The translations under genes and the position numbers were made by a program. A model generated the notes under the pieces. The model was not told the origin of the DNA and searched no databases. It was given only the letters and a program-made list of their open reading frames with translations. 64,000 nt of DNA from positions 187,544-251,543 of the IMG/VR virus record IMGVR_UViG_3300042922_000643; one strand, written 5' to 3'. Shown piece by piece: positions 3,713-62,207 of this stretch (its first letter is position 1; every line of letters starts with the position of its first letter).

Positions 3713-4222
3713 TTTCAGTATGTGTTTGACCGCTCACAAGTAACCTTGAATTCTGAGGTGAGGGGCTGCTAGAGATAGCAGTGATAAGGCAGGGCTTGGG
3801 TGAGCGTAAATAAGGTAAGGAGGAAGAGATCCAGACGGAGAGAGTCCGTCAACGAACTGTATTTGCCTTTGGGAGAGGCAGTTACCGTAAATGAGGTTGT
3901 CTTTTGCAAAATACTCTAATCGTACCCTTTTCGCACCAGTAAAGAGACTTTTATTTAAAACTCTACGAAAAAGGTGACCTCACATGAACAACAAGACTAT
4001 CAAAATCCCGAATACAACCAGATTGGCAGACGCACTGGGTTTTACCTCGCTAATAAAGGAGGTGATGCCGATGTAGATCCATTAGCACTTGAGCCATGCG
4101 TTTTTTAAGTGGAGGGTGGAGTTTCTCTTAGCCTGACCGACACGCCGTCCTAAAAGAATTTGGATTTCTGTCCTGAAGTATGACACTAAACTGCTTACAC
4201 CAACTATTAGGAGGATTTACAA

Positions 4223-4606
4223 ATGGAAAAGAATCAAATCATCACTATGTATGCCGCTTATCGTTTCGAGGATATTGAGATTGAGGAGCAAGCACAAATG
4301 CTTAAAGCAAACAATGCTGCTCTCTCCCCTACGATTCGTCGTGACGCTCTGGATTGCCTGGAAGTCATTGAGCTGATTAAAGAGGTCTATATGACCGCCG
4401 CTCAACAGGGTGTAAACATCCTGGGGATGCGCTTTGATCTGGCCTTCCAATACGCTACAGGTCAAACCCTAGATCGTTATAAAGATCGTGGTATCGTTGG
4501 CTCGGCATGGTCTGGTGTAGACCGTGGCATTGACGTCTCTGTTGGCGTGATGCGTACAGGGCTCAATCGCTTTGGTCAATGGCTGTCTAGTAAGACTGCT
4601 AAGTAA
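4223..4606 (+). CDS. Hypothetical protein
   Basis: AGGAGG RBS, biased codon usage. Confidence 0.7.
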   Translation: MEKNQIITMYAAYRFEDIEIEEQAQMLKANNAALSPTIRRDALDCLEVIELIKEVYMTAAQQGVNILGMRFDLAFQYATGQTLDRYKDRGIVGSAWSGVDRGIDVSVGVMRTGLNRFGQWLSSKTAK

Positions 4607-4668
4607 TCTAGTAAATCTATTAACCATCCGTCAGCTCAATAAGGAGCGGGATAAAGGAGAAAACTATT

Positions 4669-5196
4669 ATGTCTAACCTGTCTTTCGAACAAATCCGTAA
4701 AGCTATGTCCGTTAATGTTGCTACTGCCCCGTCTGCTGCTCTGGAGAAAACGAAGAAGGCTGTAAGCGCCGTAGGATCGTTTGTAGGCGGTGTTCTTCCT
4801 GCGACTAACAACGCCCTGGATGAACGTACAGAACGTCTCCTGGAGCTTCTGGTGATCACTCAGATGGATCTCTCGCACTTGCGTGACCAACTCGGTATGG
4901 ATATCAATCCAGAGGAGATGGATCAGCAGGCTATGACGGATGCCGTGTCCATGTATATGAGCTCATTCAAGAAGAAGCGGGAGAAAGCTGTTGAACCTCA
5001 ACCTCAAATGACTGCTCCTGGAACGGTAGAGCAATCACGTCTGCAAGCATTCCTTCAGGGGGGCACACAAGAAGCACCAGCTCCATCTGCGGCTCCTGTC
5101 GTAAACGTAGCGCCTGTGGTAGGGGTGAGCAAACCTACCACCCTTGGAGACATGACTGTCTCCATGGAATCCCCAACAGAATGGCATAAGATGTAG
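4669..5196 (+). CDS. Hypothetical protein
   Basis: AAGGAG RBS, biased codon usage. Confidence 0.7.
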   Translation: MSNLSFEQIRKAMSVNVATAPSAALEKTKKAVSAVGSFVGGVLPATNNALDERTERLLELLVITQMDLSHLRDQLGMDINPEEMDQQAMTDAVSMYMSSFKKKREKAVEPQPQMTAPGTVEQSRLQAFLQGGTQEAPAPSAAPVVNVAPVVGVSKPTTLGDMTVSMESPTEWHKM

Positions 5197-5273: not shown

Positions 5274-7277
5274 ATGAAAAATGTTAACGTTACTGCTGCT
5301 AGTTTTGTCGTAGGTAAGAATGCGGATCTGACTGTACGTGTTGCTGAAATGGTAGAGGCAGGCGTGTTGACAGACAAAGCATTTGAAATGGCTGAGCTGG
5401 TAAAAGCAGGTATGTCTGTTGGGATCACTGTTCGTAATCCTCACAACAAGAAAGAGCATATCGCTGAGGTCAACGAATTGGTTGGCATCCTGAATCGTAT
5501 GGTTGCTGAAGATCTGGAAGTTGTTGTTGAAGAAGCTCCAAAACAAACTACAAAGAAAGAAGTGGTAGAAATGAAAACAGCTCCAATGACAAAAGAAGAT
5601 ATTAAGGCTCGCATCATTCACCTGGAAGGCGAAATTGTATTGGCTGAGAAACTGTTCACAGATGGCAAACTGAAATTCGACAAAAAGACTGAACGCATCA
5701 ACGCTGCGGATCGTGAGATTGATATTCTCAGACGCAAGCTGGCTGAACTGTCTGCCCCTACTGAAACAATGAGCGGTCACACTCGTACAGCAAGAGAACT
5801 GTGGGCAGACCGTCATGTCGATATCAGCGCAGGTAGTGCGACTGCTGCTCAGAACGATCACAGTAAGGGTGCAAGAAACGCTGCATTCCGTGAAATCTCG
5901 GATCGTATTGAATATGCAAAGAATGACTATATGGCATCCCTGAAGTCCAATGATGTTGTTGTGTATGACATCGTCTACAAACAGGGTGACTATGATCGTA
6001 TTGGTAACATCGTATTCCGTGTTCCTGCTGGTATGATGGAAATCAGCAAATGGACAGGTGAAAAGTATGAATGGGTATCCATGGACGATCATGACTATGA
6101 TGGTACACTGCCTACTAGACGTCGTCTGATGGCTGGTTCTGGCTTCATCCGTTTGGCTATCAAGATGGATGCCAACAAAATGCCATATATCTCTTGGCCG
6201 AAGTCCAAAGGTAAAAATGAAGGTCAGTACTATGAAGTATTCAAGACAGCTGATGCTCGCTTTGACTTCTTGACTTCCGATAACAACCTGAATCTGAAAG
6301 CAGCTCTGGAAACTTTCTTGCTCACCTTCTGGGGTAAGCTAATGACTGCCAACGTTCGTAATCGTTCAGCTTTCAATGCAAGCTGCAACAATTGCAGATT
6401 CAAGACTGACCTGCCAATCTATGATGGTGTGGATGAAGAGTATGAGCACAAAGCAAATGCTATCGACACTTCTGAGCTGGGTCAATATGGTTCCCGTATG
6501 CCACAGCTGATCTGCACCGTGCATAGCCAACTGATGGACCGTGATCTGATTGAAGAAGTGAATGAATCGGAAGCTGTGCAAGGTAAACAGTATTTCGATG
6601 AAGAAGGTAATGTTCGCTTTGCGGGTCCGAATCATGTTGTGGTTGGTGGTAAGCCTGTTGCTCTGTATAATCTGCGGAGTCAGGCTACTGTAGACACTTG
6701 CGCTGGATGCCCGTTCTACTCCAAGAACGAACGCAAACCAGACAAACGTTATGACAAGGAAGTTGAAGAAGCAGTATTCGAATACACCAAGGCTGGTGGC
6801 AAGATCGTTCGTAAAGAAGAAGATGGCCGCCTGGATCTGAAAGCTATGGGCATCTATGTGAGCAAATACTGGACAGATCGTGCAAATGCAAACGCTCAGC
6901 CTGTATTCACGAAGACTATCGAGCATGGTAATACAAAGTGGACTCTGGGCTTCCCTGGTGAATTCGAGAACCCACAAGACTTCATGGTTATGGGTATCGG
7001 CGGTATTCGTATCTATGGTTCCCCTGATGTACTGCGTGTTGCGAAATGGGACTTCGTTCCACAAGTCGAAGCATTCCGTGCAGAAGAAGCCTCGGTTCTT
7101 AAGCTGGTTGATATCATTCACCAGACTGCAAATCAGATCACTCGTATTGATCAGGCCACCCTGGATAACGTCATTAAGATGATCCAGACTACACCTAAGC
7201 CAGTGAAGGAACCATTGGTGACTCGTTACAACCGTGCGATCAAACGTTTGGCTGATACGATCCGCGAAAATCAATAA
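5274..7277 (+). CDS. Large hypothetical protein with putative Zn-binding Cys clusters and a SpoVG-like segment
   Basis: AAAGGAG RBS before ATG 5274 (preferred over 5199); CNNC, ICTVH and CAGC motifs; YISWPKSKGKNEGQYYEVF segment. Confidence 0.75.
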   Translation: MKNVNVTAASFVVGKNADLTVRVAEMVEAGVLTDKAFEMAELVKAGMSVGITVRNPHNKKEHIAEVNELVGILNRMVAEDLEVVVEEAPKQTTKKEVVEMKTAPMTKEDIKARIIHLEGEIVLAEKLFTDGKLKFDKKTERINAADREIDILRRKLAELSAPTETMSGHTRTARELWADRHVDISAGSATAAQNDHSKGARNAAFREISDRIEYAKNDYMASLKSNDVVVYDIVYKQGDYDRIGNIVFRVPAGMMEISKWTGEKYEWVSMDDHDYDGTLPTRRRLMAGSGFIRLAIKMDANKMPYISWPKSKGKNEGQYYEVFKTADARFDFLTSDNNLNLKAALETFLLTFWGKLMTANVRNRSAFNASCNNCRFKTDLPIYDGVDEEYEHKANAIDTSELGQYGSRMPQLICTVHSQLMDRDLIEEVNESEAVQGKQYFDEEGNVRFAGPNHVVVGGKPVALYNLRSQATVDTCAGCPFYSKNERKPDKRYDKEVEEAVFEYTKAGGKIVRKEEDGRLDLKAMGIYVSKYWTDRANANAQPVFTKTIEHGNTKWTLGFPGEFENPQDFMVMGIGGIRIYGSPDVLRVAKWDFVPQVEAFRAEEASVLKLVDIIHQTANQITRIDQATLDNVIKMIQTTPKPVKEPLVTRYNRAIKRLADTIRENQ

Positions 7278-7293
7278 TTACTGTCGTCTAGTC

Positions 7294-7331
7294 GGCGGGG
7301 CTATGGGAGAGCACCTATAGCCCTTTTTGTT
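7294..7331 (+). terminator. Intrinsic terminator
   Basis: GGGGCTATGGG...CCTATAGCCCC followed by a T-run. Confidence 0.8.
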
Positions 7332-7418
7332 TTGCATAGAAGAGGGATCAGCGTCTCTATCTATTAAAATGCTGAATAAAACTAATCGCCCCAAAGAGGG
7401 CCAAAGGAGATCAATCAC

Positions 7419-9371
7419 ATGAACAAATTTTTCGCAGGCGTACAAAACGGTATCTACACTCAGTCCATCAAAGCTTCTGACCTGGTCAATGACAAGAAGC
7501 TGCAATCCGAGCTGGTAAGCCAAGCAATCTCTGAAGGCAAAGCATTCTCGATCACTTCGAATGATAAGCAGATGAAGACAGACGTGGCTCGTACGATGCA
7601 AAGTCAGTTCTCGGCTCGGGTTCAAGCATTGGTAGACTCTGCAATTGAACTGGAATCCACAGAGATTCTGGATCAGCTGCGTGAGGATGGCAAGATTGCC
7701 AAGGAAGTCTTTGAGTATGTAGAAGACCTGTATACCTCCCGCCTCGAAGAAATCCGCAACCCTTATGTTCCTGCTGCGGAAGTTATGATTGAAAAAGGTG
7801 TGAACCTCACCAAAGAACAAGTGCTGGCTCAAATGATGTCGATGGGTCTGATGCTGCATGAAACTTGCATCACACCTGCTGGTGAAGGCGTAATCGTTGC
7901 GTTTGAAGCGACTGCAAGTGGCACCATTGCAGCTGTCTCCGTTGATGGTGCATCCCCACGTCGCTATATGGCTACAAAGCTGGAAGGTCAAGGATTCCAA
8001 AACCAAACTCAAGGAGTGATTTCGATGGTAAACAAGAACGTACAATCTCAGGTGGCAATCAGCAACGACAACAACAATACAATCAAAGGAGAAGTGAAAA
8101 CAATGATGAACAACAATGTGAGTGAAGAGGCTAAGTCGATGGTAGAAAAAGCAATCCTGGGTGAAGTGTCCGAGAACATGCTGAATGACGAAGAATATGC
8201 TGAGCTGGTTGAACTGCGTTTGAACATGAGCGCTGAAGATCGTGAAGCATTGGCCGATGCAAAGATCCAGCAAGAACTGGCTGCCTTGGCTCAGCAGGAA
8301 GATGCAGGTAAAGAAGAAGTGGCTAAGCTGGCGAACTCCGAAGCTGCTCAAGCATTCTTGGCACTGGCTGGAAGCGCACCAGCTCCAAAGGCTACTGAAG
8401 GCGAAGTTAAAGCCCCAGTAACTGGCGGAGCTCCTGTCATTGCCGCTAACCAACGCAACAACCGTTCCAACAACACTACTCGTCAAGCTGCTGCCGCTGC
8501 TAGCCAACCACAAAACAACCAACCAAAAGGAGAAGTGAAAACAATGACAACAACTACTAATAACAATGCAGGTAACAACAACAATGCAGGTTTCCAATCC
8601 GTACAGTCTTCCGCATTCTCGGGTGCAAATGCTGGTGCAGGCCGTTCTGCTAACACTACACTGGAATTCGCATTCGGTGGAGCTAATACTGCTGCAACTG
8701 TACAGGGATGGGAAAACATTGAGTCCAAGCTGGCTGAAATCAACTTGGATGAATATGTAGGCCGCGGCACTAACGGTAACCAAGATTTCGTATGGTATGT
8801 ACAAGAAGCTGCTAAATATGAAGGAATGATGATGGACCTGACTACTCTGCAAGAAAACGCAATGGCTAACCCTGAGCTGGGTATCACTGCGATCAAATTC
8901 TACACTCCTGCTTCTGTTGCTGCTCTGTACAACCGTCAGCCAAACGAAAAAGACTTCATCGTCGTTGAAGTGTTCTTCGGTCTGACTTCTTACGAGTTCA
9001 CTTTCCGTCGTGGTACTTCCAACCGTGATTCCAAGCCTTACATCTACAGCAACAACATCGCTCGTAAACAAGCTAAGAACAGCGCTAACTTCTATTGCGA
9101 ATATGTTTCTTCCCGTCGTACTGACAAGCTGACTATCGTTCAACAAGCTGATGGCACTTTCCGTGAAGCTCGTAAAGTATGGGAAAACGGCACACAAGTG
9201 ATCCACACTGAAGATGCTCCATTCGCAGTTGAAGTGGGCGGCGACACTTGGGTGAACGTAGCTCCTAACTACGGTATCAAGATTGGTCAGGCTGTATTCG
9301 TTCAAATCATGTTGCTGGTTGACGAAGTATCGGGTCTGAAAGGATTCCGCGACGCAAAAGCTAACAACTAA
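7419..9371 (+). CDS. Large hypothetical protein with low-complexity linkers and in-frame internal starts
   Basis: 650-aa ORF with strong codon bias; AAAGGAGAAGTGAAAACAATG occurs twice in frame. Confidence 0.8.
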   Translation: MNKFFAGVQNGIYTQSIKASDLVNDKKLQSELVSQAISEGKAFSITSNDKQMKTDVARTMQSQFSARVQALVDSAIELESTEILDQLREDGKIAKEVFEYVEDLYTSRLEEIRNPYVPAAEVMIEKGVNLTKEQVLAQMMSMGLMLHETCITPAGEGVIVAFEATASGTIAAVSVDGASPRRYMATKLEGQGFQNQTQGVISMVNKNVQSQVAISNDNNNTIKGEVKTMMNNNVSEEAKSMVEKAILGEVSENMLNDEEYAELVELRLNMSAEDREALADAKIQQELAALAQQEDAGKEEVAKLANSEAAQAFLALAGSAPAPKATEGEVKAPVTGGAPVIAANQRNNRSNNTTRQAAAAASQPQNNQPKGEVKTMTTTTNNNAGNNNNAGFQSVQSSAFSGANAGAGRSANTTLEFAFGGANTAATVQGWENIESKLAEINLDEYVGRGTNGNQDFVWYVQEAAKYEGMMMDLTTLQENAMANPELGITAIKFYTPASVAALYNRQPNEKDFIVVEVFFGLTSYEFTFRRGTSNRDSKPYIYSNNIARKQAKNSANFYCEYVSSRRTDKLTIVQQADGTFREARKVWENGTQVIHTEDAPFAVEVGGDTWVNVAPNYGIKIGQAVFVQIMLLVDEVSGLKGFRDAKANN

Positions 9372-9385
9372 TATCCATTCACCAT

Positions 9386-9417
9386 GGGGAGTCCTTCGGG
9401 GCTCCTCTTTTATTTTA
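9386..9417 (+). terminator. Intrinsic terminator
   Basis: GGGGAGTCC-TTCG-GGGCTCCTC followed by a T-run. Confidence 0.85.
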
Positions 9418-9431
9418 AATTAGAGGAGACG

Positions 9432-10037
9432 ATGAAAATGATTAAACTCTTACCCATAGCTCCAACATTAGAGATTAAAAAACCTGAAGACAAAATGCTC
9501 TCGGATATCTTTTGTGATATTCGTCAATATGTAGATAGTGAGCTCTGTGCTATTTGCTTGGTTGAGTTTAGTAGTGAATTGTCTGCGGATGGGGCGACCA
9601 TTGAATTTTATAGTACAAAAGAGTCAGATGAATTGATCTACTCTCGCATCAAATTAGGTACGGGGCTCAAGGGAAATCCTGAGCTGTTAGTTATTAGCTA
9701 TGCCCATGAGATAGGACATCTAGAGGATATCATTATGAATTTTGATAGCAAGTTGAATGCTTATTCCGAGGTTTGTGGTGAACCAGGGAATCCTGAAGCT
9801 GAGCTCAGGGGAGAGGATCGGGCCTGGCTGAGATCTATCGATCTATTACACAGGCATAAGTTTGCTCTATGGTCTTCTTTTTTGGATTGTGTCCAAAGTT
9901 CTTTGTTCACCTATGTCGAAGAAATGATGTTGTCTCGTCAAGATCAACACAGGCTTTTAACAAGTATGATGTCACGCTATCAGAAGAAAATTGATAGTTT
10001 GGTTCTTGAGCCCGAAACGAGCGAACGCGAGGCATAG
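9432..10037 (+). CDS. Zincin-like HExxH metallopeptidase (ImmA/IrrE-like)
   Basis: YAHEIGH motif with downstream EDRAW glutamate; GAGGAG RBS. Confidence 0.6.
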   Translation: MKMIKLLPIAPTLEIKKPEDKMLSDIFCDIRQYVDSELCAICLVEFSSELSADGATIEFYSTKESDELIYSRIKLGTGLKGNPELLVISYAHEIGHLEDIIMNFDSKLNAYSEVCGEPGNPEAELRGEDRAWLRSIDLLHRHKFALWSSFLDCVQSSLFTYVEEMMLSRQDQHRLLTSMMSRYQKKIDSLVLEPETSEREA

Positions 10038-23381: not shown

Positions 23382-23516
23382 TAAAAAGTTAAGACGGCTT
23401 ATGCTGTCTTAATATAATCTCTAAGGTAGGTTTGGTCACCTTGAGTATGCTTATGGGGATAAGCGTGCTTTCCTTGGGGATTATATTAAGCCTGTATATA
23501 AAGGAGGTTACATATT

Positions 23517-46441: not shown

Positions 46442-46870
46442 ATGCCACGCAAACCTTGTATAACTCACAATGATGTTAAAATTTGGCGGGTATACGACGG
46501 CGGAGATTCAAGAGCTTATTGGTTTGCGTGGCATCCTGGCCATACAGAGGACGGCGACGATTTCCAATTCGATGTTCGTGATCTTTCCACTTACCGTCGT
46601 AGCTATGAAGAATATATTAAACAAGGTATGTCTGCTGCAAAAGCTTACGCAGGTTATCAGTCAGATATCAGAAGATTCATTAAGGAGGCCATTGATAAAG
46701 AAGAGATACTTCCTGATGGCCCCATCCCTCGTGATGACAACAATATTAAAGAACATCGTCCCGAAAAGCTGAAGTTAATTCGTGAAGTTTATGAAGCTAA
46801 GCGGCGGCAAACTTGGGAAGAAATGATCAATCGTTTTAATAAATCAAAATCGGAAGGAATGAGTATATAA
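46442..46870 (+). CDS. Hypothetical protein
   Basis: ORF between E2 and JAB. Confidence 0.6.
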   Translation: MPRKPCITHNDVKIWRVYDGGDSRAYWFAWHPGHTEDGDDFQFDVRDLSTYRRSYEEYIKQGMSAAKAYAGYQSDIRRFIKEAIDKEEILPDGPIPRDDNNIKEHRPEKLKLIREVYEAKRRQTWEEMINRFNKSKSEGMSI

Positions 46871-48246
46871 TGACAAAGAAAGAAAAAGCATTGGCAGCAG
46901 CAGCGGCAGCTGAAGCAACAACTGGAACAGCAACTACGGAGGTAACGGCTCCTGTTCAAACAAGAGAAGAAGCAATGGCAGCGTTTCGTGCTCAACTTGC
47001 TGGTGAAATTTGCCAGTATGTACCATTCTCCGTTGGCTTAACTCTTGATGATGTATCGAATATGCCTACAAACGTTGTTATCGCAAAAAATGGTCTGTTT
47101 CGTGTATCCAAGACACCTATCGGTTATTTTGCAACTCAGCTGGCCGTAGGAGACGCTAAATTCGTTATTCCTGGTGTTCAGGAAATCAAGAAGGGTGTTA
47201 CGCTTTCTATTCCAAAAATTCCTTTCGAGTACTGGCTGGAAGTTCTGTCATTTTATCGTGATGTATATAACAAGGATAAAACAGAAGCATCATTATTGTT
47301 CTTCTGGAATGACCGCGAAATTACATTGCCTACTGAATTCACTGATGGTACTCCGATTAAAGGTCTTTCGGAACGCGGCCAGCTAATCATGTATTGTCCG
47401 TCCCAGAAGAATAGTAGCGGTCTTTCAAACTTCACAGCAGATACTATGGTTCCATGGCTGCGGACGAACACAACGCCGTTACTCGAAACCCATTCTCACC
47501 ATACAATGGGCGCTTTCTGGTCGTCAACGGATAATGACAATGAGAATATGAATCAGTTCTATGGCGTCTACGGTGAAATTTTGAAACCTGATCCAAAATT
47601 CCTTTTCCGTTATGTGCATGGAACAGACAAGTCGGATATTGACTTCTATGAACTGTTTGAAAAACCTGTCACTATTACTCAGGTTATCATCGGCGATAAA
47701 GTAATTGATATTCAAAATGCCGTAGAATACAAAGGTCCATGGCCAAATCTTGAATATCCTGCTGACTGGATGGAGAAACACGCTGTTAGTTACACAGTGA
47801 CTCCCAGTTATGGCGGCGCAGCGGGTGGATATGGACGTGGCGGCCAGGGCGGTGGATACGGTCAAAATAATGGATATGGTTATGGCGGCGGCGCAAGCGG
47901 GTACGGACGCGGTGGTCTTGGCTATGATGATGACTATGTTGCAAGCCAATATCGTGCAGGAGCTGGAGGAACCGCAGGTGCTGCGGGACAAGCCAAGCTG
48001 CTTGAATTCGATGAGAGCAAAAAAAACACCGTGGACGGGGAGGACGTGGCCGATCTGACCGACGGAGTGGTCAAAAAGGTTATCGAAACAAAAACAAGCA
48101 CCGTTGAGATCGTGGCCTTGCAAAGATTGTCCCCCTTTTCCGAAAAGCAGATTTTTTCGCTTTGTGAGGAATTGTCAGAGATGGGCTACGACCAAGTTAT
48201 TCACGGGACGATCCAAGCGATGATTGGAATGACGGAGGAGGCGTAA
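46870..48246 (+). CDS. JAB/MPN+ metallo-isopeptidase (PRTRC protein A-like) with Gly/Tyr-rich tail
   Basis: E(A) ... ETHSHHTMGAFWSSTD JAMM motif. Confidence 0.9.
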   Translation: MTKKEKALAAAAAAEATTGTATTEVTAPVQTREEAMAAFRAQLAGEICQYVPFSVGLTLDDVSNMPTNVVIAKNGLFRVSKTPIGYFATQLAVGDAKFVIPGVQEIKKGVTLSIPKIPFEYWLEVLSFYRDVYNKDKTEASLLFFWNDREITLPTEFTDGTPIKGLSERGQLIMYCPSQKNSSGLSNFTADTMVPWLRTNTTPLLETHSHHTMGAFWSSTDNDNENMNQFYGVYGEILKPDPKFLFRYVHGTDKSDIDFYELFEKPVTITQVIIGDKVIDIQNAVEYKGPWPNLEYPADWMEKHAVSYTVTPSYGGAAGGYGRGGQGGGYGQNNGYGYGGGASGYGRGGLGYDDDYVASQYRAGAGGTAGAAGQAKLLEFDESKKNTVDGEDVADLTDGVVKKVIETKTSTVEIVALQRLSPFSEKQIFSLCEELSEMGYDQVIHGTIQAMIGMTEEA

Positions 48247-48292
48247 TTGCCTCCTGTTTTTCTTTACTAAAAATTGATCGGAGGAATGGAAA

Positions 48293-49255
48293 ATGGATTT
48301 TGAATTGAAAAATAACTTCGTATTGGATGTAAAAGCAAATGAACCAAAACATTTTGTACTGATCGGTTGCGGCGGTAATGGCGCATATTTCATTCGGGAC
48401 TTCATTCGTCAAGTTGCTATTCAAAACATGCAAATGTCTATGTCTTTGGATAAACGTTCGCACTGCGTTACTGTTATCGATGCCGACGAAGTTGAAGACA
48501 AGAATTTGACTCGTCAAAACTTCGTACAGAAGGACGTCGGATCTAATAAATCACAGATTCTTGCAAATCGTTACGGTTCAGCTTTCGGCGTACCGATTCG
48601 GTATGTGCCCGAATATATTCAGAACGAAGAGCATCTTTTGTCTATCATTCAGGGACAACCAGGAACGCCTGTCATCCTCGGAGCTGTCGATAACAATAAG
48701 ACCCGTAAGATCATCTATGATACCTATAAGAAGCTCAGCGGAGCCTTCTGGATCGATGCTGGTAACGAGCAATATGCAGGCCAGGTTGTTTGTGGGTATA
48801 ACTACCCTAGCGCACCTGACACAAGCAAAGCTCGGGAACCTCATCAGTTCTATATGCCTTGTGCAATTGATATTTATCCTGAAATCGCTGAAGCAACAGA
48901 TAAACTTCCTGGTGAATTGTCCTGCGCAGAACGTTCAGTATCTGCACCGCAGAACATTTTCACAAATATCACAGCTGCAACAATCATGATGGGATTTGCG
49001 AATATCATTCTCACCGCATCGAATGTTGCTGAAGGCGAAGGACTTCGCTGTCATGCTGTAACTTTCAATACTCATAATACCATCGCTCAGACTACTCGAT
49101 TGAATCATGAAGATTTATTAGCTGCACGCTATGTAGCTCCTCCTGTAGCTGAAGCACCAGAAGCTCCAGTCCCTACACCAGCGGTGAAGAAACCTGCATC
49201 CAAGAAAAAGAAAGCTCCTGCATCCGCTGCTCCTGTTCCTGCACCAACAGCATAA
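48293..49255 (+). CDS. ThiF/E1-like ubiquitin-activating adenylyltransferase
   Basis: GCGGNG, DADEVEDKNLTRQNF, GAVDN, WIDAGN and SCAE motifs. Confidence 0.92.
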   Translation: MDFELKNNFVLDVKANEPKHFVLIGCGGNGAYFIRDFIRQVAIQNMQMSMSLDKRSHCVTVIDADEVEDKNLTRQNFVQKDVGSNKSQILANRYGSAFGVPIRYVPEYIQNEEHLLSIIQGQPGTPVILGAVDNNKTRKIIYDTYKKLSGAFWIDAGNEQYAGQVVCGYNYPSAPDTSKAREPHQFYMPCAIDIYPEIAEATDKLPGELSCAERSVSAPQNIFTNITAATIMMGFANIILTASNVAEGEGLRCHAVTFNTHNTIAQTTRLNHEDLLAARYVAPPVAEAPEAPVPTPAVKKPASKKKKAPASAAPVPAPTA

Positions 49256-50042: not shown

Positions 50043-50367
50043 GACCAAGAAAGGAATCAGTTTCTGGCTCTTTTCTTGGTCCTAGAAAAAGATGTTTCCA
50101 CCTTTTACGACTCTGACATTGCGGAAACAAGAGTTCGTTCACGCGAAGGCTGAACTTATTCTACTTTTTTTCTTCAACGACAAAATCCCACCTCTCCCCT
50201 TTCTATGACTAAACTAGAAAGTGATTACAATGTAACGGCCCGTCCAAAAGGCGTCAGTGGTTTTGTAGGATGCTATCCACGAGGGATAGCGGGATCGAGA
50301 GAGCACCAGGAAGTTTCGTGGGGACCTGGGTAAAAGTGAAGCATCTTTCTAGAACCAACCAAATGAG

Positions 50368-51343: not shown

Positions 51344-51372
51344 TTGCAACTGTATTGACGTTATGGTACAAT
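51344..51372 (+). promoter_or_regulatory. SigA-type promoter
   Basis: TTGCAA - 17 nt - TACAAT with an extended -10 TG. Confidence 0.65.
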
Positions 51373-51423: not shown

Positions 51424-51972
51424 ATGAACCCAGTTCGAGAAGAAAATAAGATTACAATTGCTGAAACCGTTGCTGTAAAAACCTATATGACACGTCACCT
51501 CAGCGAGCTGCAATCGGAGCGTACTCGTGCTGCTACAGAGGAAGTCGATAAAGGCGCTACTGCTGAAATTCCAGCACGTAACGTTGATGTAATCACAGAT
51601 GAAATCTGGGAAACGTTCAAAGATATTCGAACTATTGAAAATCTCCTTGAACAAGCCAACATTCAAAATTATGTTGAATGGGATGGGCAAAAGATCACTG
51701 TTAGCGAAGCAATCTCTTTCGCTAAACAAATTCGTAGCCAAATTGATACGCTGAAGAGTCTCGGCCAACGAAAGAAGATTGATAAGGTTCCAAATCGTCC
51801 ATTTGGCACAACGGATTCGGTTCCCCAAATTCGTGTGGCTCTTTACGATCCTGATAAATACCGTGAATATGCGGCAAAGCTGGAACGTCAAGTCAATGCT
51901 CTTTCTAGAGACATTGATCACTCGAATCACACGAATTATATCGTGTTTGACGCTTCAAAATATATCGGATAA
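51424..51972 (+). CDS. Coiled-coil protein, DIP1984-like
   Basis: ITIAE...L..L ... TVSEAI...Q...LD..I...N pattern. Confidence 0.55.
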   Translation: MNPVREENKITIAETVAVKTYMTRHLSELQSERTRAATEEVDKGATAEIPARNVDVITDEIWETFKDIRTIENLLEQANIQNYVEWDGQKITVSEAISFAKQIRSQIDTLKSLGQRKKIDKVPNRPFGTTDSVPQIRVALYDPDKYREYAAKLERQVNALSRDIDHSNHTNYIVFDASKYIG

Positions 51973-52032
51973 TATGGAGGTAGACATAATCATCTTCCTC
52001 TTTTACGTAACCTGAGCTAGCACTTTGATGCT

Positions 52033-52151
52033 GCTCAGCTTGAAGGATATAACGTTTATACAGTGTTTTCGCTATAGACCGTTGACGCCTTAGCTGCTGA
52101 GGTTATATGCGATGTACGGCACTCGAAGACCTTGCATCCTTCAAGCTGAGC
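52033..52151 (+). ncRNA. UAUAC/CGAA hairpin element C
   Basis: Outer stem GCTCAGCTTGAAGGAT/ATCCTTCAAGCTGAGC; TATAC-AGTG ... CACT-CGAA. Confidence 0.7.
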
Positions 52152-52260
52152 GAAGAAGATTATACGACGTGCTGAAGAGTAGCCATATCCGACGCCTGAG
52201 CGAACAGGGGCTAGGCTTTGAAATCCCCTGACTCCTAAGACATTAGCGTCCGAATTCTTC
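52152..52260 (+). ncRNA. UAUAC/CGAA hairpin element D
   Basis: GAAGAA/TTCTTC; TATAC-GACG ... CGTC-CGAA. Confidence 0.65.
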
Positions 52261-52478
52261 TCCCCAGCTTGAAGAGTATAAGTGGTAGTAGGCCTGGAAG
52301 CAGCCATCTTAAGAGTGGGACAGCGGCTATAACTTGCTCCGTGACACTGGGCTAACTCGGGTAGCGGATAAAAGCATTTTATAGAGAGGAAATAAGGAGG
52401 CACCCCGTAACTGGTAAGGCCGACCTTTCCCTTTAGCGTAATAGCACACCATTTATACTTTTCAAGCTGTTTGGGGAA
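52261..52478 (+). ncRNA. RNA carrying a 23S rRNA L11-binding (H43/H44) domain mimic
   Basis: GTAGGCCTGGAAGCAGCCATCTTAAGAG (52288-52315) ... AGCGTAATAGCACAC (52435-52449), closed by an approximately 25-bp terminal stem. Confidence 0.7.
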
Positions 52479-52538
52479 CAGCAATCGTCTATTTCCAGAA
52501 AATCAGCCTCTATCATGAGGGAGGAGAGAAATCTCCTC

Positions 52539-52882
52539 CACAGCTTGAAGCTCCCAAGTTAAATAAAATAGTCGTTCAAATCGACGGCGTGGGTTATCCT
52601 CGCCAGCCATTGGAGGCACTTGGGAGTTACAAGCTGTGGGAACACAGCAGCAGGAAGATGTGAGCAACAGGGTTCTAGCCAGCTGACCTGGTTAGACGCG
52701 TATCGGCGGTGGTTATCCAGCGTGCGAGACACAACCAAACCAACTTGACATTGGTGTTACCTTAGGCAGGTACAAGAACCAACGTATAAGCGAATAACGG
52801 TTGACACCTTACGATAGTCACATCTAACATACTCCTTTGGATATTTCCTTTCGGAAATTCGGAAAAGTCTCTGCTTCCTGCT
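52539..52882 (+). ncRNA. Two further stem-enclosed structured RNA candidates
   Basis: CACAGCTTG..CTCCCAAGT/ACTTGGGAG..CAAGCTGTG; AGCAGGAAG/CTTCCTGCT and AGATGTGA/TCACATCT. Confidence 0.5.
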
Positions 52883-52951
52883 TTATTTTAATATTCTCTA
52901 GGGGGACACATGGTGTGTCCTCTTTTCCATTTCTATAAGGCGGTGATATTT

Positions 52952-53929: not shown

Positions 53930-54069
53930 AGTAAAGTCACAATAGGATTTATACGCTTCGATATAGTCAAGACCCGTAGTCTATTACTGGGTTGAAGCCA
54001 CGTAACCTTCCATCGGAAACGTGGCTGTCTATAAATCTGCCGAAGATCCTATTGTGACTTTACTTTATA
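53925..54069 (+). ncRNA. UAUAC/CGAA hairpin element E
   Basis: Perfect 24-bp stem TATAAAGTAAAGTCACAATAGGAT/ATCCTATTGTGACTTTACTTTATA; TATAC 53950, CGAA 54041. Confidence 0.7.
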
Positions 54070-54086
54070 ATAAGGTGGGAACATTT

Positions 54087-56246
54087 ATGAGAACGTTAGT
54101 CCTTACTCGTGGTATAATGGCTTCTTCAAAATCAACATGGATTGCTGAAAATGGTCTTGCACCTTTTACTTTATCTAGTGATAACTTGCGTCTACTCCAT
54201 TCTGCTCCACAGCTTCAAGAAGATGGCAAGCAGGTAATAGCGGGATCGCAAGAAGGTAAGATCTGGAAACTTTTATTTGAAGTTTTGGAGCGACGTATGC
54301 AAAACGGCGATTTTACCGTCATTGATGCAACACATATTACTTCGAGTTCCATTTCTGAGTATCGTGAACTGGCTAATAAATATCGTTATCGCGTGTTTGT
54401 AGTGGATTTTACTAATGTTCCTTTGGAAATAGCTTTAGAGCGGAATAAAAATCGTGAAGAATATAAGTATGTTCCAGAACATAAGATTGAAATAGCTTAT
54501 GCTAAGCTTTCAGAAAATCATGTGCCTTCTTATGCGAAAGTTATTAAACCAGAAGAATTCTGGGATCATGTTTCATATACAAAAATTGATTACAGCTCTT
54601 ATCGCAAAATTCATCATATCGGGGATGTTCATGGATGCTACAGTGCATTAATGACTTACCTTTCAGGCGAAATGAAGGAAGACGAGTTGTATATTTTTGT
54701 TGGTGATTATCTAGACCGCGGCATTCAGAACCGCGAAGTTTTAGAATTCCTCATTCAGATTAAAGACCTTCCAAATGTTATTCTTCTTGAAGGTAATCAT
54801 GAAACTCATCTTCGCAAATGGTCAATGGATGAAACCGTTAAAAGTTTAGCATTCAACCACTATACCGAAAAAGAGATTCATGATGTTAATAAGTCCGCTG
54901 TTCGTGAACTGTGCAGAAAGTTCAGACAGGTTTGTTATTATGAATATTACGGCAAAACAGTGCTCGTCACTCATGGAGGCTTATCCTGCATTCCAAACGA
55001 ACTTGCTTTGATCTCGACTTCTCAATTTATTAAAGGAGTAGGAAATTATGAAGTTGATATTGATGCTATTTTCTCGGCTTCTGAACAAGATGGAACGTAC
55101 CAGGTCCATGGTCATCGCAACATCTTCAGACTGCCTATGCAAGCCGCTGAGCGTTCTTTTAACCTGGAGGGTAGAGTTGAATCAGGAGGAGACTTAAGGG
55201 CTCTTACACTAACTCCTGAGGGGTTTCAAGAGCATTGTATCCAGAATCATGTTTTTACAACAGAACATTCTCCAATGCCTCCCGTTGTAGGTTCCAAAAC
55301 AACTACAGACAATTTCATTGAATACCTTCAGTCACACAAAATGGTTAAAGAAACACAGATAACTGATCATATTTCATCTTTTAACTTTACACGTAAAGCA
55401 TTCAATAATGGCGTTTGGGATACGCTTAACATCAAGGCTCGCGGCCTTTTTGTGAATAAGCATACTCGAAAGATCGTTAGCCGATCTTATGATAAGTTTT
55501 TTAATATTGACGAAGTTCCAGCTACAAAGATGGGAACATTAGCCAATACCCTGGAATTTCCTGTGATTTTGTCAGAAAAACCGAATGGATACCTAGGTAT
55601 TATCGGGTATGATGAGGAGACAGATGAACTGATCTACTCTTCCAAGTCTGAAACTCGTGGTACTTATGCGGTATCATTCAGAAAACTTTTCGAAGAAAAA
55701 GTTCCTGTTGAAATACGTGCTTGGCTTAAAGGATATCTTTACGGAAATGACGTGTCGATAACTTTTGAGGTTATTCTTCCACAAGAAGATCCACACATCA
55801 TAGAATATAAAGAGAATACTTTGATCTTACTCGATATTATCCAGCGAAATGTTCAGTTCCAAAAGAGATCTTATTCCGAGGTTGTTGAGCTCGCAATGAA
55901 TCTTCTTCTTCCATATCGTAAAATCAAATATGTCTTCCATAACTGGTTAAGTTTCTATCACTGGTATCAAAACGCATCTCAAGATTATTCTGTTAAAGAA
56001 GAAGGGTATGTCCTTGAAGATAATTCAGGTTTTATGACAAAGATAAAATTACCGTACTATCTTTTCTGGAAGCAAATGCGTACAGCAAAATTCCAGGTGA
56101 AGATGGAGGGCTATATGCTTCCTCAGTGGTTGCCGCCAATTCCTGACGATCTTAAAAATTTCGTTGGGTGGGCTAAACAGCAAGATCAGGAGTATTTGAA
56201 ACGCGTGGATGTTATCCAGTTGCGTACAGATTACGAGGGCTCTTAA
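54087..56246 (+). CDS. RNA repair enzyme: polynucleotide kinase - metallophosphoesterase - Rnl1-like RNA ligase
   Basis: P-loop GIMASSKST and VIDAT; GDVHG, GDYLDRG, GNHE, HGG; KARGLF, SYDKFFN, EKPNG, EGYV, KIK. Confidence 0.9.
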   Translation: MRTLVLTRGIMASSKSTWIAENGLAPFTLSSDNLRLLHSAPQLQEDGKQVIAGSQEGKIWKLLFEVLERRMQNGDFTVIDATHITSSSISEYRELANKYRYRVFVVDFTNVPLEIALERNKNREEYKYVPEHKIEIAYAKLSENHVPSYAKVIKPEEFWDHVSYTKIDYSSYRKIHHIGDVHGCYSALMTYLSGEMKEDELYIFVGDYLDRGIQNREVLEFLIQIKDLPNVILLEGNHETHLRKWSMDETVKSLAFNHYTEKEIHDVNKSAVRELCRKFRQVCYYEYYGKTVLVTHGGLSCIPNELALISTSQFIKGVGNYEVDIDAIFSASEQDGTYQVHGHRNIFRLPMQAAERSFNLEGRVESGGDLRALTLTPEGFQEHCIQNHVFTTEHSPMPPVVGSKTTTDNFIEYLQSHKMVKETQITDHISSFNFTRKAFNNGVWDTLNIKARGLFVNKHTRKIVSRSYDKFFNIDEVPATKMGTLANTLEFPVILSEKPNGYLGIIGYDEETDELIYSSKSETRGTYAVSFRKLFEEKVPVEIRAWLKGYLYGNDVSITFEVILPQEDPHIIEYKENTLILLDIIQRNVQFQKRSYSEVVELAMNLLLPYRKIKYVFHNWLSFYHWYQNASQDYSVKEEGYVLEDNSGFMTKIKLPYYLFWKQMRTAKFQVKMEGYMLPQWLPPIPDDLKNFVGWAKQQDQEYLKRVDVIQLRTDYEGS

Positions 56247-56698: not shown

Positions 56699-56819
56699 CG
56701 CCTAATCAAAAGAGCATACTTATTATACGAACTGATTTGCCTGCCCTCGATGGAGGGTCGCTGACAGTAAGTCGTTGTGCTTACCTGTTCCGAAGTAAGT
56801 ATGTTCCTTTGATTAGGCG
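56699..56819 (+). ncRNA. UAUAC/CGAA hairpin element F
   Basis: CGCCTAATCAAA..GCATACTTA/TAAGTATGT..TTTGATTAGGCG; TATAC-GAAC ... GTTC-CGAA. Confidence 0.7.
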
Positions 56820-57178
56820 CATATGAGACATCTTTACTCATGCTGTTAAGAGATGGCAGCCTTCTCGTAGGTCTATCCTCCGAGGAGTACGAATCGGCTT
56901 CGTATCGCGTGTTATGTGAACAAGTCGGCTGGCGTGGTGTGCTGGCTTAATTGAATACCCCAAGTTGCCACATGCGTAAAGAAAGATCTGAGAACCTAAT
57001 CACGGTGAGGTTATAAGGACCTAGAGCCATACTTGAGCTAATCCCAGGGAACGTAATTCGAGACGGAAGTATGGAGAGAGCGATCTCCAGAACCCAAGAT
57101 CGTAAATCGTAGACGGACGAGGCCATGTCATTACTCAATGTGGTCCTGAATCCTTGCCAAAAAACTTTTTCGCTGATG

Positions 57179-57251
57179 ACAAGATTAACTCAGTTGGTAG
57201 AGTAGCCGCCATTATTGGAGGTCAGTCGCAGGTTCAAGTCCTGCATCTTGA
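57179..57251 (+). tRNA. tRNA-like element with non-canonical anticodon arm
   Basis: Acceptor CAAGAT/ATCTTG; D arm ACTC-AGTTGGTA-GAGT; T arm GCAGG-TTCAAGT-CCTGC; anticodon arm irregular; no CCA. Confidence 0.6.
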
Positions 57252-57278
57252 AAGTGGCGAAACATAAGTCAGTATTCC

Positions 57279-57350
57279 GCAGGTATAGCTCAGAGGTAGA
57301 GCGGGGCCAGGTTGCTGGTCATGTCGCGGGTTCGATCCCCGTTATCCGTG
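57279..57350 (+). tRNA. tRNA-like element with 4-nt anticodon loop
   Basis: D arm GCTC-AGAGGTA-GAGC; T arm with GGTTCGATCC; GGCCAG-GTTG-CTGGTC; no CCA. Confidence 0.6.
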
Positions 57351-58191: not shown

Positions 58192-60805
58192 ATGAGCTTA
58201 TCTAGGGAAAAGGAAGTGATAGTTTACGTGACCTCGACGCAAGATTTATCTTTAGCCGCTGCGAAAGAAGAGCGGGGAGTCAGTTCACAACGCTTTACGC
58301 ATCTTCATCTGCACACACCAGGTAGTTTGCTAGATGGATTTTGTCGTATAGCTGATCTAGTAAAACTCGCTAAAGAATTTGGTATGGACGCCGTGGGTAT
58401 TAGTGACCATGGAAATTGCCATTCTCATGTCGAGTTTTTTCAAGCTTGTAAAGAAGCAGGAATTAAACCAATTATGGGTATGGAAGGTTATATTACGCCT
58501 CACCGTAGTTGGAAAAAACCTGAGTTTACAGCCAAGCATTACAAAAAGCTTTCCTATCGTTATCGCACTAAAGCAGAGATGCAAGAAGACGGCGCGGAAC
58601 AAATCGTTATGGATGGCAAGAATCTCGTTCCTAATGAGATCATTGATGCCTATCTCCGTAGTGAATTGGCAAGCCTAAACCGTTTGATTAAAGATGAGAG
58701 AGAAAACGGTAATGATCCAGAGCTGTTGAAGGATTTGTACGCGGCCAAGGATGATACTCGTATCTCAATCAATGCTTTGATCAGCTCAGGAGATCTTATT
58801 TATTCAGCGGTTCCTTCTCTAGCGACAGCAAATCTTTTTGAAATGCGGCCGAAGACGGCACATCTTTTAATGATTGCACGAACGAACGAAGGATATCAGA
58901 ATCTGCTTAAAATCACCAGTATTGCTCAGCTTGAGGGTGTTTATTACAAACCACGTGCTGATTATAAGTTAATTAAACAGTATGGGAAAGGCATCATTGC
59001 TACTAGTGCGTGTCTTGGCGGAGAAATCCCTCAGCTTATTCGTAAAGGGAAAGAAAGACTCGCTAAGAACATTGCACGGTTTTACCAAAGCTGCTTCGAT
59101 GAGTTTTACTTTGAGCTACAACCAAGCCATTTGGAAGAGCAACACTATGTAAATGAAGTCCTGATCCGCTGGAGCGAAGAAATGGATATTCCGCTCGTTG
59201 CGACTTCAGATGCTCATATGCTGCGTCCAGAAGACCTGCCTATTCACTCCGCATTAACCAAGATTGGTAAAGCCCAAGATGATGCGGATATCAACGTTTA
59301 TGAAAGCTGTTACTTCAAAAGCGCAGATGAAATGCTAGAAGGCGGAATGCCTGTAATTGCACTAGAGAATGCGTATCTCATTTCTCAGAAGTGTAATGTT
59401 GAGCTTCCCCTCGGTAGAATTCACCTGCCTAGATTCACAGTTCCACCCGAGTATACATCAGACACCTACCTTTTAGAGCTTACAGACAATGCTTTGTTCC
59501 AGATGGCGCTCGAAAAGGATATTGATATCACCGTATATAAAGATCGTTTGAAGGAAGAACTTCTCGTTATCTTCGAGAAAGGATTTTCTGATTACTTTCT
59601 TATCGTTTGGGACTATATTGCTTTTGCGCGGCGTCAAGGCATTCTAGTAGGACCAGGCCGCGGTAGTGCAGGAGGTTCTCTTGTTGCCTATCTGCTGAAA
59701 ATCACCAATATTGACCCTATCAAGTATGATCTTCTCTTCGAACGGTTCCTTGACCCTTCGCGTATGGACTTGCCCGATATTGACAGTGACTTTGATTATG
59801 TACGAAGACACGAGGTTGTTGAATATATCGCTGGAAAATATGGTCAAGATCATGTAGCTCAAGTTATTACATTCGGGTCTCTATCTTCAAAAGCGGCATT
59901 CAAAGACGTGGGCCGTATTTTAGGTATTGACCATAATATTATTAACACAATGAATAAACTAATTCCTGTTGTCTTTGGAAAGCCTTATGGCATTGACAAG
60001 GCCTTAGAAGAAGTCGAAGAATTAAGGGAGTATGAAAGACGCTATCCTGAAATGTTCGATCTTGCTCGAAAAGTTCATTCCCTGCCTCGGTCTACAGGTA
60101 TTCATGCTTGTGCTCTTGTTATTACACCAGAGCCTATTGAGGAAATGGTACCCTTGATCAAGGGAAAAGCAGGAGAAATCGTTACCCAGTACGACGGCCC
60201 TACATTAGCGGAACAGTACGGTATCCTCAAGGTTGACTTGTTGGGACTGAAAAACCTATCTGTCATTGATATCGCCCGTAAGCTTGTCCTAGAGCGATAT
60301 GACCGCGATATCGATCCTGATACATTAGAGTTTGATGATCCGCGCGTATTCAAGACTATTCAACAGGGGCACACGGCGGGGCTCTTCCAAATTGAGAGCA
60401 GCGGGATGACCAAAATGTTTCAAAGTCTAAACCGCGTTACATTCGATGACCTTGTAGCAGGAATAGCTTTATACCGTCCAGGCCCAATGCAGCATATTCC
60501 CGACTACTGTGCTCGTGCAAATGGATACACAGAGGTAACTTATCCATGTGAAGAACTGCGTCCTGTGCTAGAAAAAACGCATGGTATTGCCGTCTATCAA
60601 GAATCTATCATGGCAATGTCCAGAGTTATGGCGGGATACACAAAAGCTGAGACTACTAAGCTGCGTAAAGCGATTTCCAAGAAAAAAGAAGAGGTTATGC
60701 GTCCAGCCTTGGATGAGCTTTTCAAACGAGTCACGATGAATGGCCACTCGGAAGAATTGGCAAAGAAAATCATCGACATCATCGAGCCTTTCGTAGGCTA
60801 TGCGT
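58192..60805 (+). CDS. dnaE: DNA polymerase III alpha subunit, exon 1
   Basis: PHP domain HLHLHT..SLLDG, GPGRGSAGGS, PDIDSDF, KVDLLGL; reads to FVGYA before the intron. Start could be GTG 58228. Confidence 0.95.
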
Positions 60806-61275
60806 TAATAGATGAACGGAAGTGTTCATGAGCGCCCTTGGCGAGCAATCGCCATTGAATAACTAGGTGAATTTAGGGGAGTCCTGGAGCAACAGTCGTG
60901 AGACAGATGTATGGTGACCCTAAGCGAAGTTTTGTGTAGATGGTGGCGGAATAGGTAGACGATAGGTCGGCTTAGTAGGTTTGGGTTGTGGTTCGAATCC
61001 ACGATGCGCAATACGCGTAGACGCCGTGACGGTAAAAACCTGGCTATGTGAGGTGCAAATCCTCACCCACTATACAAAAAACGTTCAACGACTATTCTTG
61101 AAATGGCCATGAGAATTGGCAACAGAAGTAGGGCCTATGCTTATAAAGATAGGCGGGTGAGAGTCCCTTAATCCGAAGCGCCTAGCATCCTCAGAACTTT
61201 GGGGATGGTGATATAGTCTACTCCCTCTCTGCTCGACAGAGAATTCAAAATATGGGGAAACCCAGGGTGAGATGG
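60806..61275 (+). mobile_element. Group I intron in dnaE (470 nt, no homing endonuclease ORF)
   Basis: 5' splice site after U60805 and terminal G61275; splicing restores GYA-F-NKSH. P3 CTAGGTG/CGCCTAG, P GAATTTAGGGGA, Q CCCTAAGC, R GTTCAACGACTA, S GATATAGTC. Confidence 0.92.
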
Positions 61276-62207
61276 TTAACAAATCCCACAGTGTAGCATA
61301 TGCTATCGTCTGCTACATGACCGCTTACTTTAAAACATATTACCCTTTGGAGTTTATGGCGGCGTTGTTAACAGTATTTGGTAGTAATGTTAAGAAAGCA
61401 GTCCCTTATATCGCTGAATGCAAACGTATGGGATTCGAAGTATTGCCACCCGATGTAAACAAATCGGGATACGGTTTCGTAATCGAAGGCACAAATCTTC
61501 GTTTTGGCTTGAACAGCTTAAAAGGTCTTGGTGAAGTTGCGCTTGAACGCATTATAGAAGAGCGTCCTTTTGTAGATCTGGAAGATGCGATCAAACGAGT
61601 TCCGAAGAAGTTCTTGAACAAACGCGTCGTCGATGTGCTTAGCCTTTGCGGAGCCTTTGATGATCTTGCGAATGAAAAGAATCGGATGAAAATCGTTGAG
61701 AAAGCATATAAACTTCGTGGAGAGAAGAAATTTGATCTCACAAGTTTTATTGAAAACTTCGATCAAAAGGCTAAGCTTGATCATGAGAAAGCTATTCTAG
61801 GCGTCTACGTCAGTGGTCACCCACTAGATGGCTACGCTACCGCTGTCGGGCCTTGGCTTGAAAAGTCTGAAGGGGATCGATTCGATACCGCGGGAATTAT
61901 TGCCGAATTCAACGTGATTAAAACCAAGAAAGGTGATGAAATGGCCTTTGTAGATTTGGATACTATCGAAGGTCTGCAAACTATTGTCATCTTCCCTCAG
62001 CAGTATTCGTCCATTCGTGGCCAGCTTGTTGAGGAACTGATCATGAAGATTACGGTTCAAGTCGAATACAATGCTGTGCGCGGCGAACGTAATTACATCG
62101 CCAAGAAGATCACGATTCCGAAGAAGATCAATAAGGGACTTTATATCCCGAAAGCTGCTTTGGAAGAAGAAGACACTACCAGTGAATATGAACAATGGGC
62201 ACAATAG
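61276..62207 (+). CDS. dnaE: DNA polymerase III alpha subunit, exon 2
   Basis: NKSHSVAY..YFKTYYP.EFMAALL, LPPDVNKS, FGL..LKGLG, LGVYVSGHPL, C-terminal OB fold. Confidence 0.95.

Follow-up and report, generated by a model that had tools for sequence, protein, structure and literature searches.

The GTPase-associated centre (GAC) of 23S ribosomal RNA (rRNA) binds uL11 and the base of the uL10-bL12 stalk, and it contacts EF-G, EF-Tu, RelA, and the elbow of transfer RNA (tRNA). In the ribosome it is the 1067 loop of the GAC that touches the tRNA elbow, and residues A1088-A1090 make tertiary contacts in the rRNA. The leaders of ribosomal protein (r-protein) operons act in cis, lie 5' of the bacterial gene under their control, and resemble the rRNA site only loosely. 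In rRNA operons the two flanks of each RNA pair into a helix around it, and RNase III cuts this helix. Phages and prophages feature the large structured RNAs GOLLD and ROOL, often near tRNA genes, and the usual explanations for the phage tRNA clusters themselves are codon usage and evasion of defences that cleave tRNAs. Here we describe a non-coding RNA locus of a jumbo phage, at positions 51973-52951 of a 64,000-nucleotide (nt) stretch of DNA (the window), which is the final 64 kb of the 251,543-base IMG/VR record IMGVR_UViG_3300042922_000643 (rated complete; G+C 42%). The locus features an array of five helix-closed units, and the third of these (unit 3) is a copy of the GAC.

Unit 3 has the fold of helices 42-44 of 23S rRNA, the uL11- and uL10-binding GAC. 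An exact 12-mer and an exact 11-mer of the unit are identical with E. coli 23S 1068-1079 and 1090-1100 (rrlB). The core of unit 3 opens with P1, the equivalent of helix 42, and contains all of the parts of a phage GAC-mimic RNA family that we define by covariance model R1, namely P1, helix 43, GAGU, the insert helix, UUUGG, the GUAAnA loop, and the ACAC tail. Covariance model R1 was built from an alignment of 42 members of this family (A5) from which the window was left out; the model has 165 positions and its E-values are rough. Unit 3 scores 82.7 bits (E 8e-20) from model position 1 to 165. The elements of the known members Cronobacter phage GAP32 and Aeromonas phage 4_4572 score 84.6 and 96.9 bits, respectively, and the model also recognizes real rRNA, with 52.3 bits for E. 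coli 23S 1048-1112, end to end, and 61.4 bits for a Paenibacillus 23S fragment. Outside the core, residues 52262-52285 pair with 52451-52476 in an outer shell helix that is specific to the array. Unit 3 is the single copy of the family in the genome. A BLAST search of the gap against GenBank phages returned one short match, which falls directly upstream of tRNA-Met in a gap of Aeromonas phage 4_4572 that has no annotation, and a side-by-side comparison of the two loci reveals two common blocks enclosed by a closing helix. The exact pattern of the insert hairpin is common to 19 IMG/VR contigs and Aeromonas phage 4_4572, with covarying variants seen by eye. The initial annotation of this DNA had missed the identity of the module.

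Two other assignments were considered for the unit. The purine-rich AGUA segment of the insert was rejected by eye as a mimic of the sarcin-ricin loop because it pairs with downstream pyrimidines and forms no hairpin. Theta (HDV-like) ribozymes, which occur next to phage tRNAs (PMC10879173), have a different architecture, and there was no match to Rfam HDV families; the position of the family element, upstream of or between tRNAs, does not fit this assignment either.

The RNA family is large and phage-specific. It was surveyed by exact-pattern scans, so that the sample is biased towards the conserved blocks. An 18-base pattern from the 5' block was found in at least 119 IMG/VR contigs and a 21-base pattern from the 3' block in 19, while a 20-letter 3' pattern, with the first base dropped, has three true copies in 185,579 species genomes, all on contigs of metagenome-assembled genomes. 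The cultured carriers include Aeromonas phage 4_4572, Cronobacter phage GAP32, Serratia phage BF, Pseudomonas phage pf16, Xanthomonas phages XacN1, XbC2, and XaC1, and Erwinia phage Kaldavass. In all of these the element lies in a feature-free gap, except for Kaldavass, in which a hypothetical protein is annotated there. No Rfam 15 family matches the array at its gathering score, and a search at E-values up to 10 gave chance-level matches only (MIR396, 21.9 bits against a threshold of 80; ToxI, 19.2 bits against a threshold of 50). A search of 14 other family loci with Rfam matched only tRNAs. No description of a phage GAC mimic was found in the full-text literature, in which coverage of subscription journals is poor, so an earlier report is possible.

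The conserved features of the family are those of the ribosomal domain. Among 95 distinct members, the loops of 1067 type (UAGARGC) and of 1095 type (GUAAnA) are preserved, U1060.U1078 is found in 93, and R1056.A1103 is found in 88, with a purine at both positions in 91. The helices covary. The P1 closing helix features up to 6 pair types in the same members, pair 1058-1080 features 5 pair types and is 99% paired, and pair 1082-1086 switches between U-A and C-G. In alignment A5, for which the structure was drawn by hand, 91.3% of the cells are paired, compared with 66.4% in shuffles, and the covariation score is 0.612, compared with 0.155 in shuffles; this score was matched by 0 of 500 shuffles, and controls in which the structure was slid along the alignment gave 0.11-0.18.

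All members except one or two carry an insertion of 36-511 nt between 1090 and 1091. The first four pairs of the insert show 4-6 pair types and are 84-100% paired, and for the first helix of the insert, also with 4-6 types, the paired share is 92-100%. The inserts form recurring subtypes (e.g. loci L058, L083, L091, L136, and L056); one subtype features GCGAAAUGU ... GAUGUG blocks and another the GNC-ACC-hairpin-UAAG-GNC element of the window. The inserts may carry a function of their own. An insert-free GAC copy of ~65 nt was observed in one IMG/VR phage (L047, 3710-3776; R1 37.6 bits), and another locus (L085) has two family copies 318 nt apart, at 5138 and 5456.

Unit 3 lies within an array that folds more strongly than expected. 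The + strand of the gap has a folding energy of -322.5 kcal/mol, compared with -268.7 ± 8.1 for shuffles (z score -6.6), and the minus strand folds less strongly (z -5.0). The 10-mer CAGCTTGAAG has four copies in the 251,543 bases of the record, three of which are in the array at 52036, 52265, and 52541, and AGCTTG and CAAGCT have three copies each in the array, compared with 0.39 per kb across the window. Unit 1 is closed by a helix of 16 bp, unit 3 by ~26 bp, and unit 4 by ~20 bp, whereas the helices of units 2 and 5 are 6 and 9 bp long. The folding, the closing helices, and the shared, genome-rare 10-mer show that the array is real and non-random. The initial annotation described it as abutting units, each closed by its own stem, and proposed that three of the stems share a sequence. 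The shared sequence was borne out, as units 1, 3, and 4 each have one of the three array copies of the 10-mer in their closing stem. A closing stem of its own was found for units 1, 3, 4, and 5, but the fold of unit 2 is not above shuffles (z -0.18). Units 3 and 4 do not abut, being separated by a 62-nt spacer that features an 8-bp hairpin, GGAGGAGA/UCUCCUCC, at 52520-52539. A SigA promoter had been placed at 51344; a promoter-like site does exist there (9/12, with TG), but a second site is located right before the array, at 51947-51975. This second site overlaps the end of the upstream gene and is known only from its match to the consensus; transcription of the non-coding RNA probably begins there. 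The terminator at the other end, called at 52900-52924 ahead of the HIRAN gene, is the only terminator-like site of the region. The coordinates are collected in Table 1.

Table 1. Features of the RNA array and of its surroundings (positions in the window).
Feature	Position	Strand	Description
182-aa gene	51424-51972		phrog_25222
Sigma-70-type promoter-like site	51947..51975	+	-35 TTGACG, 17-nt spacer, -10 TAATAT; consensus scan 9/12
Unit 1	52033..52151	+	119 nt; 16-bp perfect closing helix; shell CAGCUUGAAG / CUUCAAGCUG; z -5.6
Unit 2	52154..52261	+	6-bp closure; inner loop UAUACGA / CCGAA; z -0.18
Unit 3	52262..52476	+	GAC-mimic RNA; ~26-bp stem; z -4.4
Unit 3 core	52278..52457	+	end-to-end match to covariance model R1
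Helix 43 with 1067-type loop	52291-52305	+	part of unit 3 core
Helix 44 5' strand GAGU	52313-52316	+	part of unit 3 core
Inserted domain	52317-52433	+	within helix 44 of unit 3 core
Subtype-specific insert hairpin	52398..52423	+	GNC stem; ACC / UAAG internal loop; 3-bp stem with tetraloop
1095-type loop GUAAUA with closing pairs	52436-52445	+	part of unit 3 core
Spacer between units 3 and 4	52477..52538	+	62 nt; small hairpins; z -2.35
Unit 4	52539..52638	+	100 nt; ~20-bp closing helix with shared shell; z -7.5
Unit 5	52649..52882	+	234 nt; 9-bp closing stem; homolog at L027 ~7312-7495
Intrinsic terminator	52900..52934	+	11-bp hairpin, then U-rich tail; terminator scan
HIRAN gene	true start 52952		Pfam match from that start
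Pnkp-like RNA repair enzyme	54021-56246		741-aa kinase-metallophosphatase-T4-type RNA ligase fusion; phrog_8238, 790 bits
Two tRNA genes	57179-57252 and 57279-57350	same as unit 3

Additional evidence on the other units comes from a distant relative of the phage. Searches of IMG/VR and metagenome contigs with the upstream protein found no close relatives, and neither did searches with the Pnkp-like protein; a word-index protein search found one relative, with a neighbouring protein that is 51% identical, and this gave locus L027. Unit 5 is the only unit besides unit 3 with a detectable homolog. It is 63% identical to the L027 sequence across 201 nt (E 2e-6), both sides are changed in 5 of 27 consensus pairs, and its closing stem is kept in L027 by two compensatory changes (GG/CC to AA/UU, by eye). 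The interior of unit 4 features three small hairpins, one of which bears a T-loop-like UUCAAAU loop, and the AGCUUG / CAAGCU shell of the unit is retained at the equivalent position in L027 (7186-7302). Units 1, 2, and 4, the leader, and two other gaps have no homolog in 1.3 Mb of phage loci, and two patterns from units 4 and 5 gave only chance matches in coding sequence when scanned in IMG/VR and metagenomes. The inner-loop words of unit 2, UAUACGA and CCGAA, recur (by eye) in the module at 56699-56820. The units other than unit 3 were also compared with other parts of rRNA by short-word BLAST against the E. coli rrn operon, and the matches were at chance level only; unit 4 matches 23S 2472-2487 at 15 of 16 positions (E 0.22) with a differing helix topology, hence mimicry is not claimed.

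The equivalent slot of L027 contains an array of 1,071 nt (6509-7579), also made of helix-closed modules, most of which differ from those of the window. The common parts are unit 5 and the AGCUUG/CAAGCU shell of the preceding module only, and the GAC mimic was not found in the 12.5 kb of L027 that was searched. One module of the L027 array features a tRNA-like T-arm with CCA after it. The array is directly preceded by a NADAR gene, and the locus has more large gaps with tRNAs, at 4142-5005 and 8252-9487. Similar modules were observed elsewhere in the window. A 122-nt module with a ~25-bp closing helix (56699-56820, z -7.0) lies in a 485-nt gap upstream of the two tRNAs, and a Y-shaped, helix-closed module of 83 nt (23408-23490) lies in a 135-nt intergenic gap. 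Of the stem-enclosed units that had been proposed outside the array, this Y-shaped module is well supported by its fold (z -6.8), but the one at 50258-50358 is not, as 50250-50365 folded alone is not significant (z -0.4).

The array can be read as separate RNA modules or as one large RNA. In the latter, the five domains would form one integrated RNA that works as a single uncut particle in the manner of GOLLD or ROOL. A single promoter-like site and a single terminator bracket the entire stretch, the fold of the whole region is highly stable, and the relative has an array of more than 1 kb in the same slot, all of which would fit such a particle. However, GOLLD, ROOL, and every other Rfam family are unmatched even at an E-value of 10, and the minimum-energy fold needs no pairing between domains, except that the outer leader pairs weakly. 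The domains are also conserved independently of each other, in that more than 100 other phages have unit 3 by itself and the relative shares only unit 5 and the unit 4 shell. We consider an integrated RNA unlikely. The view of the initial annotation, in which the array is a row of separate RNA modules, is supported, because unit 3 stands alone in those phages and because unit 5 is common to a distant relative with otherwise different modules. The long closing helices, which have sequence in common, would be suitable targets for a nuclease specific for double strands. The initial annotation further proposed a single precursor that would be cut into separate RNAs. RNase III processing of such a precursor would call for long, nearly perfect helices of about two turns around every module; helices of this kind flank units 1, 3, and 4 but not units 2 and 5.

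The family is linked to tRNA genes. A tRNA lies within 600 nt of the element in 67 of 113 distinct loci and within 2 kb in 79, and in all 79 of the latter the nearest tRNA is on the same strand as the element. One member is located after a strong promoter and before a tRNA array, and others lie between tRNAs. This arrangement has led us to weigh a reading in which the GAC-like module acts not on ribosomal proteins or toxins but on phage or host tRNAs, by binding them or aiding their maturation, with the variable insert adding specificity. The strict same-strand linkage and the positions directly behind a promoter or between tRNAs are consistent with such a role, as is the nearly invariant 1067-type loop. 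However, every stable RNA that depends on the machinery of tRNA processing would equally be expected to be co-transcribed with tRNAs, and the retained rRNA features belong to the uL11-binding core as much as to the loop. Additionally, 34 of the 113 loci have no tRNA inside 2 kb, among them GAP32, whose 2.5-kb flanks are without an annotated tRNA, and in the window the distance is 4.3 kb. A role in tRNA binding or maturation appears somewhat less probable still than a single large particle.

A third reading, that unit 3 is a functionless captured piece of host 23S rRNA and the remainder a spacer that folds by chance, would account for the blocks identical to 23S rRNA and recalls the real rRNA contamination in some 'phage' records, but it is excluded by covariation, since the helix and the insertion are upheld by many compensatory changes in more than 90 distinct phage sequences, the closing helix is unrelated to flanking rRNA, the insertion is absent from rRNA, and the flanks are phage genes and tRNAs; we regard it as highly improbable. 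Genuine 23S rRNA was observed in several short 'phage' records and one IMG/VR contig (among H30-H42, L087, and L152), probably as host contamination, and such entries have to be removed in any survey of the family.

The gap is the longest non-coding stretch, free of supported open reading frames (ORFs), in the whole 251.5-kb genome. Five mechanical ORFs within 51973-52951 have no Pfam or PHROG matches, and a protein-coding reading of the gap was dropped because none of them has such support. The sequence of the array was traced to three soil metagenome DNA runs only, with no RNA run among the matches. The gap is flanked by the 182-aa gene upstream and the HIRAN-domain gene downstream. The 182-aa gene has few relatives, in Bacillus phages, with 31-33% identity; it had been described as DIP1984-like, a label that is not sustained by its match to NF038048, which at 16.2 bits (E 0.0088) is below the NCBIfam cut-off of 70. 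The surroundings of the array are RNA-centred, with the gene of the Pnkp-like repair enzyme placed between the array and the tRNAs. The tRNA at 57179 is the sole ARAGORN call and its anticodon is unassigned, and the tRNA at 57279 was found by Rfam only. A group I intron (60814-61243, Rfam 50.1 bits) splits the gene of a DnaE-type DNA polymerase III alpha subunit into a part with PHP, NTPase, and finger domains (58192-60831) and a part with the HHH domain (61272-62207). Upstream of the RNA region, a JAB-like gene, which is a weak match, and a ThiF/E1-like gene are located at 46870-49255, and a relative (L029) also has a Prok-E2 gene; taken together, these genes suggest a ubiquitin-like conjugation set.

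The best overall explanation, to which we assign a probability of roughly 60%, is a phage non-coding RNA locus in which the third domain mimics the GAC and the others are independent modules. The locus would be transcribed as one RNA of ~950 nt, from the promoter-like site to the intrinsic terminator, with five helix-closed domains. The shared AGCUUG/CAAGCU shell helices are probably processing or stability signals, and cleavage in the long shell helices may release the domains as separate RNAs. Unit 3 copies the structure of the GAC, with one more helical domain growing from the 5' strand of helix 44, and its most likely mode of action is molecular mimicry, in which the free RNA would bind one of the usual ligands of the ribosomal GAC. 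Candidate partners are uL11 or the uL10-bL12 stalk proteins, in which case uL11-dependent RelA signalling could be weakened, and a translational GTPase or RelA itself. Alternatively, the RNA would serve as a sponge or decoy during phage translation, drawing off a host factor or toxin directed at the GAC. A partner from the host would fit two negative results. No protein family lies next to the element in more than 6 of 132 loci, and no L11, L12, or L10 gene was found in the phage genome, nor was a NADAR gene, for which it was also searched.

There are several points that weigh against this explanation. Unit 3 departs from its family in positions that bear on the tertiary core. It is the sole member of 92 in which the 1080-1086 linker is 3 nt shorter, it features C rather than U at 1065, and it has a U.U at 1057-1081, and these changes affect the tertiary core that is read by uL11 in rRNA. 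The family fold itself may differ from the ribosomal GAC, because the insertion sits at the contacts made by A1088-A1090. Unit 3 also lies 4.3 kb from the nearest tRNAs (57179 and 57279) and not among them. For units 1, 2, and 4, whose homologs were not detected, the case for functional RNAs is one of folding energy, and unit 2 fails by that measure. Function, partner, and processing are all inferred. Two other particulars of unit 3 are its loop, UGGAAGC, which deviates from the UAGARGC type, and its native P1, which is lengthened by the shared shell helix of the array.

A bolder proposal can be built on the candidate partners. One bacterial toxin is documented to ADP-ribosylate precisely the loop at 1095-1098 (PMC8661411), so attack on the GAC does occur in bacterial warfare, but nothing connects such toxins with this phage. 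In this proposal many phages, including jumbo phages, would keep a free GAC decoy among their tRNAs, which would soak up a host weapon directed at the GAC, such as a Tre23-type rRNA ADP-ribosyltransferase, or uL11 and thereby blunt the RelA alarm. The phage described here would additionally carry a battery of shelled modules, each of which would imitate or bind another host target, and these would be freed by cleavage at the common shell. We put this forward tentatively, as a possibility that we doubt more than we favour.

If the GAC assignment is true, the family is a previously unnoticed class of stable phage RNA modelled on a functional centre of the ribosome. A co-transcribed GAC mimic would give phage tRNA clusters a second translation-related function, the protection or manipulation of the factor-binding site. 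Members of the family are found in cultured phages, which makes the idea open to a direct test. Structural work on RNA can use the family as a natural collection of GAC variants with insertions, and for annotation it gives an identity to more than 100 'empty' intergenic gaps of phages. In the window, the array would consist of RNA cassettes that evolve independently, rather than of repeats or junk.

The closest known counterpart of unit 3 is the GAC itself (helices 42-44, E. coli 1051-1108, also known as the 58-mer or thiostrepton loop). The two have a common secondary structure and 1067 and 1095 loops that are almost identical, together with the non-canonical U1060.U1078 and R1056.A1103 and the covarying pairs 1082-1086 and 1058-1080. 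In contrast to the ribosomal domain, the phage RNA stands alone with a length of 60-600 nt, is closed by its own helix, features the helical insert of 36-511 nt at 1090/1091, and has A in place of U at 1101. The r-protein operon leaders, such as the L10 leader (RF00557), are likewise non-ribosomal RNAs that imitate a protein site of rRNA. Unlike these, unit 3 is phage-borne, has no r-protein gene nearby, and copies the rRNA nearly letter for letter, and no Rfam leader family matched the array. Unlike GOLLD and ROOL, for which there was no match at E-values up to 10, the array is modular with independently conserved domains. rRNA operons, which are processed by RNase III, and the T4 tRNA cluster likewise feature consecutive structured RNAs behind one promoter, but the modules of the array are neither rRNAs nor tRNAs. 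Pseudo-ToxI of phage phiTE (PMC3475682) is likewise reported to be a non-coding phage RNA that works by imitation of a host RNA. It imitates an antitoxin repeat, whereas unit 3 imitates a domain of the ribosome, in what would be a decoy role.

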